This document shows, piece after piece, positions 46,332 through 55,975 of a DNA stretch of 64,000 bases. The translations under genes were made by a program, and so were the position numbers. A model generated the notes under the pieces. The model was given only the letters and a program-made list of their open reading frames with translations. It was not told the DNA's origin and searched no databases. Numbering within the stretch: position 1 is the first letter of the stretch; every line of letters begins with the position of its first letter. The stretch is taken from contig OZ251235.1 in NCBI GenBank assembly GCA_965240325.2, positions 1,674,001-1,738,000 on the forward strand. Reading direction: 5' to 3'. Source of the DNA: Rebecca billardiae RCC1528 (taxonomy: Eukaryota; Protista; Haptophyta).

Positions 46332-49300
46332 GAGTTCGAAGTTGAAAGTGCAGGCCGTTCGACTGCTCACCGTCGTCGCGACTCTTTGTCGCGACCAACA
46401 GGGGTGCCTCAAACCAAGGGAGTCAAGGGTGCCCGCGCCCCAGTGGCGCGCTCGCCGGATGTGAGGATACACCTTTTTGCCCGCGGCCTGCGGCGGGCGG
46501 CGGCGAGGGCGTGCTCCGCTGGCGGGGCGAGCGCACGGGGCACGGCGCTGCGGGCGCGGATGTGCCCGCGAAGCCGGCGCGTGCAGACGGGCTGTTGCGG
46601 GAGAGTATTCGGCGCCGCGCGACTTGCGCCACGCCTCTTTCGCCTCGGCTCAGAGCAGCGCGCACGCACGCGCCGCCTCAAGGCCAGCCTTGCCGCGCCG
46701 CAGCCGGCCGCGCGCGCGCCGTGCGCGGCGCGGTCGGGAAGGAACGGGCGCTGCTGCCGGGCGAGATGGCAAAGGCATGTGCGCACGCCATGCCGCCCCG
46801 CGGCGCCTTGATGAGCGTGTCGTCGGTCTGTTTGCATGCCTCTTCGACTTGTCACAAATGGTGTGCACGGCTGCGCGGTCGTGACCCTTGTTGGGACGAT
46901 CATTGAGACACAGAATAGTGCCAGACGGGCACGCGGGCTACTCTTACATGCATGTTCATCACCGCGTGTTCATGTAGAAGTGCTGGGTGCGACGCTTTCC
47001 TCGCGCTGATGCTCTTTCATCATCTTCTGCGAGCTCAGGTCTGGCTTCGTGCACGACAAGTGATCAGCACTCGTCAACAGCTGTGCGGATCCGTTCTCGT
47101 GCTCTTTCGCGGCGCCGCGGGGCGGCATGGCGTGCGCACATGCGTTTGCCATCTCGCCCGGCAGCAGCGCCCGTTCCTTCCCGACCGCGCCGCGCACGGC
47201 GCGCGCGCGGCCGGCTGCGGCGCGGCAAGGCTGGCCTTGAGGCGGCGCGAGCGTGCGCGCTGCTCTGAGCCGAGGCGAAAGAGGCGTGGCGCAAGTCGCG
47301 CGGCGCAGGAGGGCGCCGAATACTCTCCCGCAACAGCCCGTCTGCACGCGCCGGCTTCGCGGGCACATCCGCGCCCGCAGCGCCGTGCCCCGTGCGCTCG
47401 CCCCGCCAGCGGAGCACGCCCTCGCCGCCGCCCGCCGCAGGCCGCGGGCAAAAAGGTGTATCCTCACAAGCGGTCCTTGTTCCTTGTTCGCCGCATGATT
47501 GTAGTATGTTATGCCCACTGCTACGCAGTCACCAGATCGGCGACGTCGTCGACAGTTGGGATACCTCCAAGTGGAGGCCCGAGTGGTTGCAGCCCACTGT
47601 GCCACCAGGGTACTTGCGGCTGCGACGTGTTTGCCGCGCTGACGTTCCCCGCACACAGTAACCGCCCACCCGGGCGCGGACGCACTGCCCACAGTGCCGC
47701 CCGCGAGCCAGGGGCCCGCCGTCTCGGACCGCCAGCCGAAGCGCATGCGCCGGACCGGAGCTGCAACTACGCAGGGCCCTGCGCAGAGCCCCAGCCGGCC
47801 ACCTTGTACAGCAGAGGTGGTAGGAGCACATCCTGCACAATGCAGGGAATTCCGGCTCGGGCAGACTGCCCCTTCTGCATGCTGCTGCAGGAAACCGTGC
47901 GCCGACTGCCGCACGGGCGACTGCCGCACGTCCAGCATTGCAGGAAAGCAGCGGCTCCAGCCAAGCCGGGCAGCTGCCCCGTGACCTGCAGCAGGAAACC
48001 GCGCGTGCCGGTGTAACGAGCAGGCTCTGCTGCATGCTGCAGCGACCTCGGTCTGCAGAGGGCTTGCTGGGCTCTTGACACGAGGCACGAGGCACGATGC
48101 TCTCCAGCTGGCGTCTTGGCCAGCAGCATCTGCACCTGCTGCGGCCTGGCGGGCCGCTGGGGGAGGGTCGTAGCAGAACCCCCTTCCTGTGCCAGCTCCG
48201 AGAGCCTCAGGTCTGTCGTTCAGTGCGAGTGCACGACCCTGCACGGGCTCCAGCGGCCTGCGGGCCGGGTTCCGCGCCGGCTGGGCTGCTGCCCCTTCTG
48301 CACGCTGCAGGAAAGTCGCTCGGGCTGGGCTGCTGCCCGTCTGCATGAGCAGGAAGGCAGCTCGGGTTGACCGCCCCTTCTGCATACTGCTGCAGGAAAT
48401 CACATATGCCTGTGTTGCCTGGCCGCTGCCTGCGGGTAGTGGCGCCTGCTGCGTGTTAGCCCCGGCAAGGCGAGTGCGATGTGCCGCGCCGTCTAGGCTG
48501 CGGCCCCTTGTGCATGCTGCAGGAAAGCAGCTCGGGCTGGCAGCTGCCTGCGGGCAGCGGCGCCTGCGGAGTGCTAAACCCTTACACTGCGAACGCGATG
48601 TTCCGCGCCGGCTGGGATGTGGCCCCTTCTGCATGCTGCAGGAAAGCCGCTCAGGCTGGGCTGCTGCCCCCTCTGCATGCTGCAGGAAAGCCGCTCGCGG
48701 GCTGGCAGCTGCCTGCGGGCAGCGGCGCCTGCGGAGTGCGAAGCCTTTGACACGCCGAACGCTATGTTCCGCGCCGGCTGGGCTGCGGCCCCTTCTGCAT
48801 GCTGCAGGAAAGCCGCCCGGGCTGTACACGGCTACACGCCCACGGCGAGCGCGAGTTCCGCTCTGGCTGGGATGCTGCCCCTTCTGCATGCTGCAGGAAA
48901 GCCGCTCGGGCTGGCAGCTGCCGGCGGGCAGCGGCGCCTGCAGAGTGCTAAGCTCTTGACACTGCAAGCGCGATGTTCCGCGCTGGCTGGGCGGCTGCCC
49001 CTTCTGCATACTGCAGGAAAGCCGCTCGGGCTGGCTGCCCTTCTGCATGCTGCTGCAGGAAATCGCATCACAATGATGCCTGTTTTGTAAGGCTGCTGCC
49101 TGCTGGCAGTCGCGCTTGCGGCTGCGGTTTGCTGAGCCAGGGGCTCGACACTGCCAGCGCGATGTGCAGCGCCGGCTGGGCAGCTGCCCCTTCTGCATGC
49201 TGCAGGAAAGCCGCTCGGGCTGGCGGCTGCCTGCGGGCAGCGGCGCCTGCGAAGTGCTAAGCCCTCGACACTGCGAGCGCGTGTTCGGCGCCGGCTGGGC

Positions 49301-49784
49301 TGCTGCCCCTTCTGCATGCTGCAGGAAAGCCGCTCTGGCTGGGCTGCTGCCCCTTCTGCATGCTGCAGGAAAGCCGCTCTGGCTGGGCTGGGGCCCCTTT
49401 GCATGCCTCAGTGCTGCAGGAAATCACACATGCATGCCTGTGTTGCCTGGCAGCTGCCTGCTGGAAGCGGCGCCTGCGGAGTGCTAAGCCCTTGACACTG
49501 CGAACGCGATGTTCAGCACCAGCTGGGCTGCGGCCCCTTCTGCATGCTGCAGGAAAGCAGCTTGGGCTGTACACTGCAAGCGCGAGTTCCGCGCCGGCTG
49601 GGCTGCTGCCCCTTCGCCTGCTGAAGGACAGCCGCTCCGGCTGGGCTGCTGCCCCTTCAGCATGCTGCAGGAAAGCCTCTCTCGGGCTGGCAGCTGCCCG
49701 CGGGCAGCGGCGCCTGCAGAGTGCTAAGCTCTTGACACGGCGAGCGCGAGTTCCGCGCCGGCTGGGCTGCTGCCCCTTCTGCAT

Positions 49785-52700
49785 TGTCGAAGGGAATGAA
49801 GAGCCCGAAACGACTGAGCTAAATCGGTTCGCGCCAACCGATTTAGCTCAGTCGTTTCGGGCTCTTCATTCCCTTCGACATAACCGTAAGTCTCCTGTGG
49901 GACACCCCGCGAGGGGCTGTAGTCCCGTCCAGTGTTCTGACGGATTTGTTGTCGAGGTTTTTCTCTCCCCGCCTGGTCTTTCCCAGGTGTTCCACCCTGC
50001 GTGCTCGTCTGCTCTGTGGCTTCGTAGAGACTCCGTCTTTTGTGGGCGGTGAGCCCTTCTTTGCTGCTGTGGCTTTGTGAGGCTCTTTTTGTGTCTTTGT
50101 TGTTCACCCGGGCGACTGTACCCGGAGGTTGCGCGTCGCGGACCGTGCTCGTTTTTTCTGTCGTCGTCTTTCTTTGTCGGTCATCTTCTTCGTGCTCCCC
50201 TCTTTCGTTCGTCTTTTTGCCGACTCCTCGCTTTTCATTCCCCCCCGGAGCCGCGAGGCTCTCGCGAGGTCGAAAGCGCTTCGCGTGAAAGGCCAAGAGT
50301 TGCCCGCGTCGGTCGGTCGCTGGATTCGAACAGGTGACTTTACGGTTGACAATGCTGGGAGAACTTGGGCAAGGATGGAGACGACGAGAACAGCGGCAAG
50401 GACGTGAACGGCCATCAGCCCGCCCCAGTTGCTCCCCTCATTGGGTTGAAGCCAGGCGTGGCAGAGCGCGCGGCATTGCCGCGCTGCTCATCGGCGATCG
50501 CGCGCAAGCGCACGCCAGACTACCTCGCCGCTGCCCTGAGGGGCATGCAGGCTGAGAAGAACCGGCAAGGCGAGAAGCTCACGCTTCTCCGCAAGCCCAT
50601 CTCCAGCGCCTCCGGGCCTGGCAACATCGCTGACCTGAACTCAGGCAGCATCGTGTCGTATGCGCGCAATGCTGCATCGCACGCAAGGCCTCGAGCCGAC
50701 ATCAAGGATCACCTTGAGGAGGAGGTTCGCGCACAGCGCGGTGAGGAGGAGCGTTGCCGCTCGCATCCCCCGCCATCGCGCCACTCCATCCGCACGCACG
50801 TCGTTGCGCAGGGGATCTCAACAACTACCGCCCGGGACTCTGCGCCCGCGAGCGCGGTTCAAGAGCGCGCGGCTGAGAGCCCGCAGCTCAAGGAGTGCCT
50901 TGCGGCCTCCGAGTCATCGAACGAGGTCACCGAGCGTTCCGGGGCAGATGTAGCGCTCGACGCTGCTGCCGCTGATGCCGCTCCGACCGTCGAGGCCCTC
51001 GAGCCTGCCAACGCTGCTCGGCGTGCTGGCCTTCTGGCCGCCGCCAATGACAGCGCGGTCGTGACCGCAGTCAGTCTGCAGCCTCGCTCGCACGACTCTG
51101 TGTCTGAGTCTGACCGATCGAACGATGACATTAACACCGATGAGTGCGACGCAAACGACCTGTATGGTCTGGCAGAGCAAACTATGCTCCAAGATGCTAC
51201 GACACGTGACTCTGTCACAGCGAGCTCAAGCATCAAGTCAGCGGCCGCATTTATTATTGATGCGCCTGACCCAAACAAATACGTTTACCCCAAAATTACC
51301 AGCCTCACGATGGCTTCCGAAGCCGAGCTGCTCGCCACGAGCGACACAAGCAGCCGCGAGATGACCGCCGCAGAGACGGCAGAGTCCTCGTCTGGCACGT
51401 ATCGACTCGCGTCGAACGTAGGAAGCGCATGCGATGCAGGGGGGGCATCATACACCTGCTTGACGGCAAAGCCGCAGCAAAACCAAGTTGGCGAGCGCGA
51501 CGCGCGTGCGCATGCATCAGCTGCGTCAGCCATCACAACGCCACACTCTTGCAAGGAAGAGTATTCCGCCGAAGCTGCCGCGGATGCACATGCATCACCG
51601 CTGGACAGAACGAGCGTGAAGAAGCCCAAAGAAGGCACCACAGCCTCGACGAGGGTCACTCCTCGCTCGAAGGTAGAGCGCGAATCGCCACAGAGCGCGC
51701 GCGACACATCGACCAATGCACTTGAGTCGAAGAAACGTGACTGGATAGTCATCGAAGGAGGAGTCACAGACTCTAATCCAACCAAGAAGGAACGTGTGTT
51801 CATGGCACGCGAATCCTCGGCAGGAGTGGATACACCCGCCACACACAAGCTGACACAGTCGGCTCTGAAATCCAAGCGCGCGGTACACAGCGCGATACGG
51901 GATGCACTCGCAGAAGTGAGCACCTACTACAAGGGCAAATCCTCAGATGTCACACCGGACATAATGGAGCCCAAGGATAGCAAGCTATCCGGCTTTCAAC
52001 TCATTGCCAAAGACAAATGGGTGAAAGACGCAGCCAAAATCGATCCATACAAGGCTGACAACGCTGACGCCAACAAGATCGGATCGGTCTACGATCGATC
52101 TGCGGCAGCGATATTCAAGCAGCTGAAGGACTCTATCGAGCCTCAGTTATTCGCCTATCTGGAATCGAAGCTGCACATCAGCGATCCGAACAAGAACTAC
52201 TTGGATCTGGCGCTGCTGCTACAGATATTTGAGCGCGAGCTCAAGATCACAACTATGTCCGAACTCAGGGATGAATTCCTGAAGTTATACCCGACAAAGG
52301 TGTCGCCCATTGGCGCATCGGACATTATCAAGAAATCCGTCGAGCAAGTCCGCTCATCTCGATATGGGAATCTGGACGATGCTACGATGTTGGTCTTCAA
52401 GCTGTATAACAGCATGCACGACCATCCCCAAGTCTACGAGTCAGTTATCTCGCACTTCGGAGCGCTCACGCCCGAGCAATGTGTGGATAACACTGACCAG
52501 ATAATGGCCCAGATGGAAGATGCCTACAAACGGCACGGCTCAATGAAGCTACTCCATCAGAACAATACCAAGGGGAGAGAGACCGAAAATTATTCCAAGA
52601 TACGCCAAAATGCTGATTATCAGCAAGGCACGCGGCGACGCGGTGACTTTGAGGGCGCCGAAGTCTTCGCCGCTCAGGCCCAAAAGGCTCCAGCCAATGG

Positions 52701-53869
52701 CGAGAGCGGGCCGAATATCTCGGACACCGGCAAACGGTGCACTCACTGTGGTCTCAAGAACCATACTGCCCAGCAGTGTTGGAAGCTCCACCCAGAGCTA
52801 CGCCCCAAGGCCAACAATTACAACAAAGGCAAAAACAAGGGAGCCAACAAATTTCCCAAGGAGCGTATCCATTTCCTGGATATTCCTGCTCCGGATGCCT
52901 ATGATTGACTATCAAGGCAGGGCATGACCCAATAACAAGGTCCAAAATCAAGGCCAAAGAGTGAACACATGGTGCAAATAAGCCCAGGACTGACTCGGGT
53001 TACCCAAAACCGTCACACGGAAGTCCCAGCAAATGACCCGTATCCTGGCATTGGCAACCATTACTGACTCCAATTCACTCATGCACACAGATGCACAAAC
53101 AATACCATGCCCAAAATCACTCATAATCCAAGCTTAGTCCTCACAGACGAGCGCATATTGGATTGAGGGGGGGGGGGGGGGGGGTGTCAAAGGAATCGCC
53201 AATCTACAGTGATTTCCAATTTCCAATCCAACATTTTACTCGCAGTCACACAGTGGCGGCGCGACCGCTGCGGCGGCGCTCGCACAAAATCCTCCAAAAT
53301 CGACACAACCGTAAAGTCACCTGTTCGAATCCAGCGACCGACCGACGCGGGCAACTCTTGGCCTTTCACGCGAAGCGCTTTCGACCTCGCGAGAGCCTCG
53401 CGGCTCCGGGGGGGAATGAAAAGCGAGGAGTCGGCAAAAAGACGAACGAAAGAGGGGAGCACGAAGAAGATGACCGACAAAGAAAGACGACGACAGAAAA
53501 AACGAGCACGGTCCGCGACGCGCAACCTCCGGGTACAGTCGCCCGGGTGAACAACAAAGACACAAAAAGAGCCTCACAAAGCCACAGCAGCAAAGAAGGG
53601 CTCACCGCCCACAAAAGACGGAGTCTCTACGAAGCCACAGAGCAGACGAGCACGCAGGGTGGAACACCTGGGAAAGACCAGGCGGGGAGAGAAAAACCTC
53701 GACAACAAATCCGTCAGAACACTGGACGGGACTACAGCCCCTCGCGGGGTGTCCCACAGGAGACTTACGGTTATGTCGAAGGGAATGAAGAGCCCGAAAC
53801 GACTGAGCTAAATCGGTTGGCGCGAACCGATTTAGCTCAGTCGTTTCGGGCTCTTCATTCCCTTCGACA
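49785..53869 (+). mobile_element. Gag-only copia-like element with 564-bp inverted terminal repeats; TSD TGCAT
   Basis: TGT...ACA ends. 49785-50348 is the reverse complement of 53306-53869. A PPT (TTGAG+poly-G) precedes a 3' LTR at 53185-53869. Confidence 0.9.
50350..52908 (+). CDS. Ty1/copia-type Gag-like protein, 5'-truncated
   Basis: C-terminal CTHCGLKNHTAQQCWKLHPELRPK zinc knuckle. The frame is open up to the inverted-LTR junction and no pol follows. Confidence 0.8.
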   Translation, partial: QCWENLGKDGDDENSGKDVNGHQPAPVAPLIGLKPGVAERAALPRCSSAIARKRTPDYLAAALRGMQAEKNRQGEKLTLLRKPISSASGPGNIADLNSGSIVSYARNAASHARPRADIKDHLEEEVRAQRGEEERCRSHPPPSRHSIRTHVVAQGISTTTARDSAPASAVQERAAESPQLKECLAASESSNEVTERSGADVALDAAAADAAPTVEALEPANAARRAGLLAAANDSAVVTAVSLQPRSHDSVSESDRSNDDINTDECDANDLYGLAEQTMLQDATTRDSVTASSSIKSAAAFIIDAPDPNKYVYPKITSLTMASEAELLATSDTSSREMTAAETAESSSGTYRLASNVGSACDAGGASYTCLTAKPQQNQVGERDARAHASAASAITTPHSCKEEYSAEAAADAHASPLDRTSVKKPKEGTTASTRVTPRSKVERESPQSARDTSTNALESKKRDWIVIEGGVTDSNPTKKERVFMARESSAGVDTPATHKLTQSALKSKRAVHSAIRDALAEVSTYYKGKSSDVTPDIMEPKDSKLSGFQLIAKDKWVKDAAKIDPYKADNADANKIGSVYDRSAAAIFKQLKDSIEPQLFAYLESKLHISDPNKNYLDLALLLQIFERELKITTMSELRDEFLKLYPTKVSPIGASDIIKKSVEQVRSSRYGNLDDATMLVFKLYNSMHDHPQVYESVISHFGALTPEQCVDNTDQIMAQMEDAYKRHGSMKLLHQNNTKGRETENYSKIRQNADYQQGTRRRGDFEGAEVFAAQAQKAPANGESGPNISDTGKRCTHCGLKNHTAQQCWKLHPELRPKANNYNKGKNKGANKFPKERIHFLDIPAPDAYD

Positions 53870-55975
53870 TGCATACTGCACGAAGGCCGCTCGGGCTGGC
53901 TGCCCCTTCTGCATGCTGCTGCAGGAAATCGCACCACATGCCTGTTTTGCCAGGCTGCTGCCTGCAGGCAGCCGCGCTTGCGGCTGTGGTTTGCTGAGCC
54001 AGGGGCTCGACACTGCGAGCGCAATATGCCGTGCCGGCTGGGCAGCTGCCCCTTTCTGCATGCTGCAGGAAAGCAGCTCGGGCTGGCAGCTGCCTGCGGG
54101 CAGCGGCGCCTGCGGAGTGCTAAGCCCTCGACACTGTGAGCGCGTTGTTCGGCACCGGCTGGGCTGCTGCCCCTTCTGCATGCTGCAGGAAAGCCGCTCT
54201 GGCTGGGCTGGCGGGGCCCCTTCTGCATGCCTCAGTGCTGCAGGAAATCACACATGCATGCCTGTGTTGCCTGGCAGCTGCCTGCGGGCATCGGCGCCTG
54301 CGGAGTGCTAAGCCCTTGACACTGCGAACGCGATGTTCAGCACCAGCTGGGCTGCGGCCCCTTCTGCATGCTGCAGAAAAGCAGCTCGGGCTGTACACGG
54401 CAAGCGCAAGTTCCGCGCCGGCTGGGCTGCTGCCCCTTCGCCTGCTGAAGGACAGCCGCTCTGGCTGGGCTGCTGCCCCTTCTGCATGCTGCAGGAAAGC
54501 CTCTCTCTGGCTGGCAGCTGCCGGCGGGCAGCGGCGCCTGCAGAGTGCTGAGCTCTTGACACGGCGAACGCGAGTTCCGCGCCGGCTGGGCTGCTGCCCC
54601 TTCTTCATACTGCAGGAAGGCCGCTCGGGCTGGCTGCCCCTTCTGCATGCTGCTGCAGGAAATCGCATCACAATGATGCCTGTTTTGTAAGGCTGCTGCC
54701 TGCTGGCAGTCGCGCTTGCGGCTGCGGTTTGCTGAGCCAGGGGCTCGACACTGCCAGCGCGATGTGCAGCGCCGGCTGGGCAGCTGCCCCTTCTGCATGC
54801 TGCAGGAAAGCCGCTCGGGCTGGCGGCTGCCTGCGGGCAGCGGCGCCTGCGAAGTGCTAAGCCCTCGACACTGCGAGCGCGTGTTCGGCGCCGGCTGGGC
54901 TGCTGCCCCTTCTGCATGCTGCAGGAAAGCCGCTCTGGCTGGGCTGCTGCCCCTTCTGCATGCTGCAGGAAAGCCGCTTGGGCTGGCAGCTGCCTGCTGG
55001 CAGCGGCGCCTGCGGAGTGCTAAGCCCTTGACACTGTGAACGAGATGTGCCGCGCCGGCTGGGCTGCTGCCCCTTCACCGCGCCGGCTGGGCTGCTGCCC
55101 CTTCACCTGCTGAAGGAAAGCCGCTCGGGCTGGGCTGCTGCCCCTTCTGCCTGCTGCAGGAAAGCCGCTCGTGGGCTGGCAGCTGCCTGCGGGCAGCGGC
55201 GCCTGCGGAGTGCTAAGCCCTTGACACTGCAAGCGCGTTGTTCGGCGCCGGCTGGGCTGCTGCCCCTTCTGCATGCTGCAGGAAAGCCGCTCTGGCTGGG
55301 CTGCTGCCCCTTCTGCCTGCTGCAGGAAAGCCGCTCGTGGGCTGGCAGCTGCCTGCTGGCAGCGGTGCGTGCTGAGTGCTAAGCTCTTGACACGGCGAGC
55401 GCGATGTTCCGCGCCGGCTGGGCTGCTGCCCCTTCTGCATACTGCAGGAAAGCCGCTCGGGCCGGCTGCCCTTCTGCATGCTGCTGCAGGAAATCGCATC
55501 GCCTGCGGCTGCGGTTTGCTTAGCCAGGGGCTTGACACTGCACGTGCAATGTGCCGCGCCGGCTGGGCCGCTGCCCCTTCTTCCGCATGATGATGCAGGG
55601 AAGCCGCTCGGGCTGACTGCACTTTCTGCATGCTGCTGCAGTAAATAAGGCACGCCTGTGTTGCTTGGCAGCTGCCTGCTGGCAGCTGCGCCTGTGGTGT
55701 GCTGAGCCCTTGGCACTGTGAGCGCGATGTTCCGTGCCATTGCAGGGCAGCTGCCCCTTCCTCTGCATGATCGATGATGCAGGAAATTAGCTCGGGCTGG
55801 CTGCCCCTTCTGCCTCCTGCTGCAGGCGATCACGCATGCCTGTGTTGCCCTGCAGGCAGCTGCCTGTGGGCAGCGGCGCCTGCAGCTTGCAGGGCCCTCG
55901 AAACTGCGATCGCAGTGGTTCCTTGCCTGATTAGCGGCTTTGCACAGCCGAATGCCAGCGTCGGTTGCAACTTGT

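Follow-up and report, generated by a model that had tools for sequence, protein, structure and literature searches.

A 64,000-nucleotide stretch of the genome of the haptophyte Rebecca billardiae RCC1528 (contig OZ251235.1 of assembly GCA_965240325.2; C18:1674001-1738000 in our numbering, hereafter the window) carries at 49785-53869 an insertion that joins two families of mobile DNA: a gag-bearing retroelement of copia type and a hairpin-ended family that we call P/X. This window unit is a single-copy chimera in which gag-element sequence takes the place of the central P of an inverted P/X dimer. Throughout, P denotes the 96-nt terminal palindrome and X the 468-nt arm of the hairpin family, LTRn the 313-bp long terminal repeat (LTR) of the gag element and I its interior; L-numbers are loci fetched from the genome (72 Mb, 41 contigs, roughly 67% GC) and C-numbers are contigs. 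P, X, LTRn and I were mapped onto 30 fetched loci, and the ends of the units were inspected.

The only long repeat in the window unit is inverted: its two arms (49785-50348 and 53306-53869, 564 nt each), described as inverted copies by a first-pass annotation of the window, are 100% complementary and enclose 2957 nt. Direct long terminal repeats are absent. The outer ends of both arms are near-perfect 96-nt palindromes. That on the left (49785-49880, TGTCGAAGGG...CCCTTCGACA) has the loop CGCGCC and mirrors that on the right (53774-53869, loop GGCGCG), which, folded as single-stranded DNA, gives a 45-bp stem with a 6-nt loop (-60.7 kcal/mol, z = -16.9). Inward of the left P lies X′, the inverted 468-nt X (49881-50348, minus strand), 100% identical to the X of the young copies L002-L006 and without a P remnant at its inner end. 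Four nucleotides follow, ACAA (50349-50352), which precede TGCTGGGAG in no other copy and are either untemplated filler or the ACA that ends the 5′ LTR of the gag element, with one A added. The gag-element internal region (50353-53184, plus strand) starts at the point that, in normal copies, comes right after an 11-nt presumed primer-binding site (PBS); it contains an open gag frame of 847 codons with a CCHC knuckle (50365-52908, plus strand) and ends with a purine tract of 18 G (53167-53184). At 53185 the sequence TGTCAAAGG opens LTRn nt 1-117 (53185-53301, plus strand, TGTCAAAGGAAT...CCAAAATC), the final TC of which is common to the end of P: TCGACA, the last 6 nt of a 5′ P (53300-53305, plus strand), stands here as it does at the 5′ P-X junction TCGACACAACCG of L002 and L003. 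The right arm X (53306-53773, plus strand, 468 nt), a non-coding, purine-rich strand, and the right P complete the unit.

The termini, TGTCG...CGACA, are flanked by the 5-bp duplication TGCAT (49780-49784 on the left, identical to 53870-53874 on the right). The annotated TGT...ACA ends and 5-bp duplication, typical of copia integrases, are thus present, and with the purine tract and TG...CA ends they give the unit the marks of a copia-type insertion. When the flanks are rejoined with one TGCAT they align at 114/117 to a paralogous satellite unit at 54551-54667, and a further stretch (48949-49067) also matches. A satellite unit so restored, together with such precise ends, points to a clean single insertion and not to an assembly inversion: the unit entered the satellite array as one piece, just as the annotation had supposed. 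The surroundings (48500-49784 and 53875-55000) are GC-rich satellite with variable units of ~120/190 nt and a common core, CCCCTTCTGCATGCTGCAGGAAAGCC; the satellite blocks on either side are 95-100% identical over long stretches (for instance 49038-49337 = 54638-54937).

The source of the cargo is a young family with 43 normal copies. A genome search with the 2957-nt interior returned ~40 copies at 93-99% identity (most at 95-99%), all of which start at 50353 and stop at ~53301-53304; for the full span 50353-53184, identity to some 40 other copies is put at 97-99%. Normal copies are 3.46 kb long, with direct 313-bp LTRs (TGTCAAAGGAAT...TTCCCTGACA), a purine tract and, directly after the 5′ LTR, the 11 nt TGCTAGCACGG that we presume to be the PBS; perfect 5-bp duplications flank 10 of the 11 inspected. 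Their gag ATG straddles the border between LTR end and PBS (ACA/TG), and their LTRn parts from the window sequence after nt 117. In the window unit the 11 nt are missing and this native ATG is lost, the next in-frame ATG lying at ~50545. Nor is there any pol: the single 847-codon frame holds no pol domain by frame list and Pfam, in keeping with the annotation, which had found neither PBS nor gag start nor pol. The normal copies lack pol as well; as a non-autonomous copia derivative, the gag-only element is nothing out of the ordinary. The run of G in the purine tract varies between copies (18 nt in the window, 7 nt at L033:4321-4327, at least 10 nt at L037).

That the gag is copia-like, as annotated, is borne out by comparison within the genome. 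The C-terminal 350 aa of the window Gag align throughout, at 51-52% identity, with the gag part of the gag-pol frames of a family we call Copia-B, the reverse transcriptase (RT) of which is RVT_2 (for example gag at C15:409619-410677 in a 1965-codon frame, with its RT at C15:406117-407518), and on this sequence relationship we class the window gag as copia-type. Identity to the gag of another family, Copia-C, is ~50% over the first ~227 aa plus the zinc-knuckle stretch. A Pfam search with the window gag frame matched no family, an Atlas search gave weak leads only, to Retrotran_gag_2, and a sequence search of the PDB gave nothing meaningful. At least three copia families occur in the genome: Copia-A (~19 copies of 6.7 kb with a 330-nt LTR, as at L063:5797-6126 on C11, encoding integrase, then SH3, then RVT_2, and with TGGCGGAGCC downstream of the 5′ LTR, at the place expected for a PBS), Copia-B (3 copies, near C15:404-413 kb, C18:520-528 kb and C20:1630-1637 kb, with a gag-pol frame of 1965 codons) and Copia-C (~25 copies, ~2227-codon frames). 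With the rve profile, a search of the genome found Copia-A and one weak match only; it was not exhaustive, since the integrases of the other copia families escaped it. P is similar to a copia U5 end (CTCTTCA..CCCTT.GACA), and the U5 end of Copia-A, CTCTTCACCCTTTGACA, resembles the P end, CTCTTCATTCCCTTCGACA. Copia-A is nonetheless not the obvious partner, for its gag is unrelated to that of the window. A PBS common to the gag element and Copia-B was likewise ruled out: the 16-mer ACATGCTAGCACGGTG (the LTR-end ACA and the following 11 nt) occurs 43 times, always in normal gag-element copies.

The arms of the window unit have a different source. Searched against the genome, the right-hand repeat gave more than 180 matches, of which the only full-length one is the window itself and nearly all others comprise the distal ~570 nt. 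This distal 568 nt, X plus P, occurs at many loci without any gag element, which sets P/X apart as a separate, non-coding family. Of the right end as first described – a purine tract followed by an ordinary 685-bp LTR – the purine tract stands, but the LTR is LTRn nt 1-117 fused to 568 nt of P/X; and although, as stated, the left end inverts the distal 564 nt of the right (with no mismatch), that distal part does not belong to the LTR of the gag element.

P/X occurs in several arrangements. Monomers (P-X-P, 660 nt) are found with the duplications AGTAT (L002), ATTAA (L005) and CGACT (L025), and inverted dimers (P-X′-P-X-P, 1.24 kb) with ATAAG (L013), CCAGC (L019), CGAAT (L003) and TTTTT (L006); further inverted dimers are L004 (TCTTC), in which the central P is lost, and L024, which lies inside a TA repeat. 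Loci of the family include L013:1501-2736 (C38), L003, L006, L019, L016 and L024, and about 5 more in the genome match list. There is also a direct dimer (P-X-P/P-X-P, L014, duplication TCTAT), complex multi-unit blocks (L011, duplication ACTGA, and an array on C14) and a cargo-carrying unit on C36 (duplication CATTA). In all, 5-bp duplications are clear at 12 P-bounded units besides the window unit; P-bounded units of very different content carry one integrase-type footprint. At L014:743-2069 (C27) the two monomers meet in an intact end-to-end junction (CAGACA/TGTCGA), like that of a 2-LTR circle, within one duplication, which suggests that linear monomers were ligated before integration. The annotation had raised the prospect of a multi-copy family bounded by terminal inverted repeats, and for the arms this is right, given their inverted dimers with distinct duplications. 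It fails for the gag-carrying unit, a one-off: every other copy examined has direct LTRs, and both junctions of the window unit are unique genome-wide.

P/X is a more unusual object than the chimera, with its hairpin ends, flip/flop of the loop, head-to-head dimers and 5-bp duplications. Diverged subfamilies stay palindromic through compensatory changes (GGCGTTG with CAACGCC in L024, TGTCTGAGG with CCTCAGACA in L014), and there are 0 hairpin mismatches in these two. The 6-nt loop occurs in three states, GGCGCG, CGCGCC and CGCGCG. Both asymmetric states adjoin the X end where X is 100% identical (window and L003 versus L006), indicating that the loop flips on a short time scale. In the monomers L002 and L005, which are independent young insertions, the loop of the 5′ P is CGCGCC and that of the 3′ P GGCGCG: mirror images. 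This rules out P as a miniature LTR of the kind found in TRIMs (terminal-repeat retrotransposons in miniature), the LTR-type regeneration of which would make the 5′ P a direct copy of the 3′ P. Arms that are mirror-identical, including the asymmetric P loop, are found in the window unit, L003, L006 and L013. The polarity of the dimers is family-wide: the simple inverted pairs in the genome match table are (-,+) in 11 of 11 cases, that is head-to-head, with the X starts central and the X end and P outward, and the opposite centre occurs only in the complex C14 array. The loop states of L003 are exactly as predicted from fold-back of an L002-type monomer.

Other aspects of the family may be noted here. 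P-X-P was considered as the LTR of a larger element and rejected: the sole direct pair at a spacing of 3.3 kb (C18:813654 and 816932) results from a segmental duplication (98.3% identity). This locus (L028 and L025, C18:812154-818998) is a 3.28-kb tandem duplication (98.3%) that holds a P/X monomer, and one duplicate is missing exactly one outer hairpin arm (P nt 5-47). X is broken near nt 205-219 in L006:2350-2632 and L003:2383-2549; the insert in L006 was considered as captured cellular mRNA and proved uninformative, being a ~290-nt repeat of very high copy number (718 first-look candidates at 99-100% identity). Two motifs present in all P/X copies, TAGCTCAGT (P 3′ half, 53833-53842) and GTTCGAATCC (X nt 17-26, 53322-53331), resemble pol III A and B boxes at tRNA-like spacing, a resemblance that would put the transcript start near the centre of P. 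A tRNA scan of a P/X dimer with ARAGORN gave no match, an Rfam scan only sub-threshold miRNA-like matches that merely reflect the hairpin, and a metagenome scan with the 32-nt core of P 0 matches. Neither a Rep/HUH nickase nor a telomere resolvase lies inside P/X units, no genome-wide search for them having been made.

A critical issue is how gag-element sequence came to lie between two P/X arms, and here the junctions are telling. The left one reads ...CTTTACGGTTG/ACAA/TGCTGGGAG...: the arm stops at the first base of X, 4 nt intervene, and the gag part begins, its boundary falling within 0-11 nt of the LTR/PBS border. The right one reads ...CCTCCAAAATC/GACA/CAACCG..., that is LTRn nt 115-117, the last 4-6 nt of P, and X, with a 2-nt microhomology (TC) at LTRn 115-117. 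An independent junction in L006 (...CCAAAATC/AACCGTAAAG) falls at a near-identical LTR position (117-121): it uses AACC, common to LTRn nt 118-121 and the X start, and introduces 30 nt of LTRn, the far side of which joins a P centre. One LTR position hit twice independently and a border at the edge of the PBS look like landmarks of reverse transcription, in which the LTR position would mark the 3′ end of genomic RNA and the left border the primer-occupied PBS.

Orientation points the same way. Of 10 junctions in which retroelement sequence meets an arm at its X start, 9 have it collinear with X, namely the window right junction, L006, L011, two in the C14 array, L022, L018, one in L030, and C36. 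The exception is the second arm of the window unit; the other anti-parallel junction, in L030, is on the X-end side of its arm. Such a bias fits copy-choice between co-packaged plus-sense RNAs, whereas random end joining should give both orientations.

The window unit is not the only one to have gained cargo. A second such unit, C36:619816-622892 (L015 and L029 merged), has the structure P-X′-P-X(1-6)/1.9 kb/X(~36-468)-P between duplications of CATTA; its arms are 95.5% alike, and the cargo replaces X nt 7-35 of the right arm. Within that cargo lie the C-terminal portion of an RVT_2 reverse transcriptase (116.8 bits), the remainder of the pol frame and untranslated 3′ sequence; it is the RT/RNase H half of the low-copy Copia-B, three other copies of which are 99-100% identical. 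This copia is only distantly related to Copia-A, and its gag is the closest relative of the window gag.

Two further loci combine gag-element and P/X sequence. At C14:1164431-1169556 (L008-L010, L020) a gag element retains both 313-bp LTRs, its interior partly replaced by a 2.7-kb palindromic P/X array; the left junction of the array lies 36 nt past the LTR, joined to a P centre, and beyond the array lie two pieces of gag sequence, the first inverted and the second direct. L030:1130-2420 (C30) is a fold-back within a gag element, reading I(1-380), a centre-to-centre P/X unit, the reverse complement of I(80-380), and I(363-...). Both of its junctions use a 9-nt homology (GGTTCGCGC/GCGCGAACC) between gag sequence and the P centre, which indicates that some "centre" breakpoints are homology-driven.

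Our leading explanation, which we hold with even confidence, is that the window unit is a single-cycle chimeric cDNA, produced by template switching, furnished with two P ends and integrated whole by a copia-type integrase. One particle would have packaged a P/X RNA and a gag-element RNA, and all that followed would belong to one round of reverse transcription. Minus-strand DNA would begin at the outer end of the 3′ P and copy X; at the X start, the base of the next P hairpin, it would switch to the 3′ end region of the gag-element RNA at LTR nt ~115-121, and copying would then run to the edge of the primer-occupied PBS, where 4 extra nucleotides would be added. For the second, inverted X and P, the strand could have used its own 5′ end or another P/X minus strand as template, or have gone back to a dimer RNA beyond its central hairpin. 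Such a DNA, with a P terminus at both ends, would have been inserted in the satellite repeat by a copia-type integrase, giving the TGCAT duplication. The annotation had likewise supposed a cDNA with two U5-type ends, made by fold-back or template switching and then integrated, and that much is most likely correct; what does not hold is an origin from a single element and its own LTR. The route through reverse transcription and the integrase at work are what we infer from the junctions, the polarity and the footprint. The product itself, present once and without native gag start, PBS or 5′ LTR, is most likely an inert by-product and probably a dead end.

The head-to-head rule, taken with the collinear junctions, suggests a wider route for the family: synthesis from the outer P end, on an X-sense template, toward the X start. 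A nascent strand that arrived there could meet one of three fates. It might be finished as a monomer, fold back on its palindromic 3′ end to give a head-to-head dimer, or switch to another packaged RNA and so acquire cargo. Tentatively, and with more doubt than we attach to the origin of the window unit, we propose that P/X is an undescribed non-autonomous element, the X-sense RNA of which is copied by a copia RT into linear, hairpin-ended DNA that may form fold-back dimers and is inserted by a copia integrase through two U5-like ends. It is a young, active-looking family that would depend on an integrase of retroviral type.

Several considerations weigh against this account of template switching. 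At the outer end of P we identified no site from which minus-strand synthesis could be primed. The position of R and of the poly(A) site within the LTR is deduced from just two junctions, and the tally of collinear joins draws on about ten, not all of them independent (two are in one C14 locus). Breakage of the central palindrome followed by deletion would likewise leave intact outer and variable inner ends. The evidence, moreover, is that of the assembly.

The last but one of these points leads to the strongest alternative: an ordinary P-X′-P-X-P was inserted (TGCAT), and its central palindrome later broke as a hairpin or cruciform, was resected, and was repaired in situ, an incomplete gag-element cDNA being captured in end joining or the broken end itself serving as primer for reverse transcription. 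Dimers of this kind, inverted and with a central P, are frequent and have 5-bp duplications of their own, and several rearranged copies do break at or near the P centre (L006 at 51, L011 at 53, L024 at 55, L008 at 50); at the duplicated C18 locus one copy is minus exactly one hairpin arm. The 2-nt microhomology and 4-nt filler at the window junctions are typical of end joining, and in yeast retrotransposon cDNA is captured at chromosome breaks. Set against this, end joining should allow either orientation, yet 9 of 10 junctions are collinear with X; the captured piece ends at landmarks of reverse transcription, the PBS edge on one side and an LTR position as in L006 on the other; and a full-length RNA copied at a nuclear break should carry R-U5, which is absent. 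We therefore consider repair in place unlikely, though it deserves to be taken seriously.

Improbable, to a greater degree, is a composite DNA transposon, in which P/X would be a cut-and-paste element served by a transposase of Ginger/TDD type, and two opposed copies with a gag fragment between them would have moved by their outer P ends. Inverted repeats, TGTNR...YNACA ends and 5-bp duplications match TDD-4/5, and AT-rich targets match Ginger2 (PMC2836005); the 5′ P of L002 and L005, mirroring the 3′ P, excludes regeneration of the ordinary LTR type. The rve search, not an exhaustive one, gave only a copia family and one weak match, however, and neither the head-to-head polarity (11/11) nor the collinear cargo is explained. 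Both inner P copies are also gone from the window unit, so that two extra deletions would be required.

Very little remains of the annotation's own version, a single copia-like element with a 685-bp LTR and a fold-back cDNA bearing an inverted copy of the distal LTR. A purine tract followed by TGTCAAAGG at 53185 does look like the start of an LTR, and the arm does repeat the distal 564 nt exactly, in inverse orientation; but the 685-bp unit exists at no other locus (the full-length match is the window alone), the normal LTR is 313 bp and unlike the window after nt 117, and the distal 568 nt are an independent family, found without the gag element at many loci. Least credible of all is a mis-joined or inverted segment in the repeat-rich satellite: in its favour are arms of 100% identity, a repetitive setting and a unit known from the assembly alone, but the unit has precise ends, a perfect 5-bp duplication and an empty site that restores a satellite unit at 114/117, and a like architecture recurs with different duplications at many other loci.

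The window unit may be compared with several known systems. LTR retrotransposons are defined by direct repeats, and retroelements that have kept gag and lost pol are familiar as BARE-2-like elements and as LARD (large retrotransposon derivative) and TRIM derivatives. The cargo family resembles them in its gag of copia type, its direct 313-bp LTRs with 5-bp duplications and its purine tract; the window unit differs, with no direct LTRs, PBS or native start and with inverted ends taken from another family. Recombinants made by retroviral or Ty1 RT show microhomology of 2-4 nt or short filler at their junctions; the enzyme switches close to the ends of its templates, and foreign sequence may be gained between one switch and the next. 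The window unit is like them in the type of its junctions and in the sequence gained between two switches, but we know of no described RT recombinant that gained a second, inverted U5-type end and then integrated by way of two U5-type ends.

Parvoviruses such as adeno-associated virus have hairpin termini that flip and flop, and adenovirus termini are repaired through a panhandle. P/X recalls both in its 45-bp terminal hairpins, 6-nt loop in two orientations, dimers with a central palindrome and mirror-image ends; terminal palindromes, flip/flop loops and palindromic dimer junctions are together the features by which rolling-hairpin replication is recognized. P/X units differ from parvoviruses in that they hold no Rep/HUH nickase or viral gene and are chromosomal insertions with integrase-type duplications.

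DIRS1-type elements are also retroelements bounded by inverted long terminal repeats. DIRS elements encode a tyrosine recombinase, make no target duplication and contain an internal complementary region. The present units differ, since the window unit and 12 other P-bounded units have a 5-bp duplication and the ends here are TG...CA; neither a recombinase nor an internal complementary region was seen in the window unit, a genome-wide search for tyrosine recombinases not having been made. For DIRS1-type elements one report describes single-stranded linear cDNA intermediates (PMC7192593). Searches of the literature turned up no integrase-type element with inverted LTR-like arms at its ends, and DIRS was the only type of inverted-LTR retroelement found.

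There is also a likeness to Ginger2 and TDD-4/5, which combine an integrase-like transposase with terminal inverted repeats and TGTNR...YNACA termini, with 5-bp duplications in TDD-4/5 and a preference for AT-rich targets in Ginger2; inverted LTRs have been proposed as a possible origin of Ginger-type terminal repeats (PMC2836005). The window unit shares with them terminal inverted repeats, TGTNR termini and a duplication that, at 5 bp, lies within the 4-5 bp of Ginger/TDD elements. It differs in that no integrase-like transposase lies within the unit (nor was one found by the non-exhaustive rve search), in that its cargo has landmarks of reverse transcription at the borders, and in a strand polarity that suggests an RNA stage.

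These results are also a caution to annotators: software that looks for LTRs will overlook such units or join them wrongly, and what was taken for a "685-bp LTR" comes from two families fused together. The value of the window unit lies in what it records of the behaviour of the P/X family. At least twice P/X has enclosed retroelement genes between inverted arms that were inserted with a normal integrase footprint, and its ends, which form perfect hairpins, look like those of a copia U5 and accept whatever lies between them. P/X bears on how integrase-bearing elements such as Ginger/TDD and Polinton came to be bounded by inverted repeats, and makes the passage from LTR to inverted repeat testable in a living system. 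Should P/X indeed be a copia-driven hairpin element, the window and C36 units would show the pick-up of genes by template switching, and with it a natural route from LTR-bounded to inverted-repeat-bounded integrase substrates, the very step postulated for the origin of Ginger-type elements.

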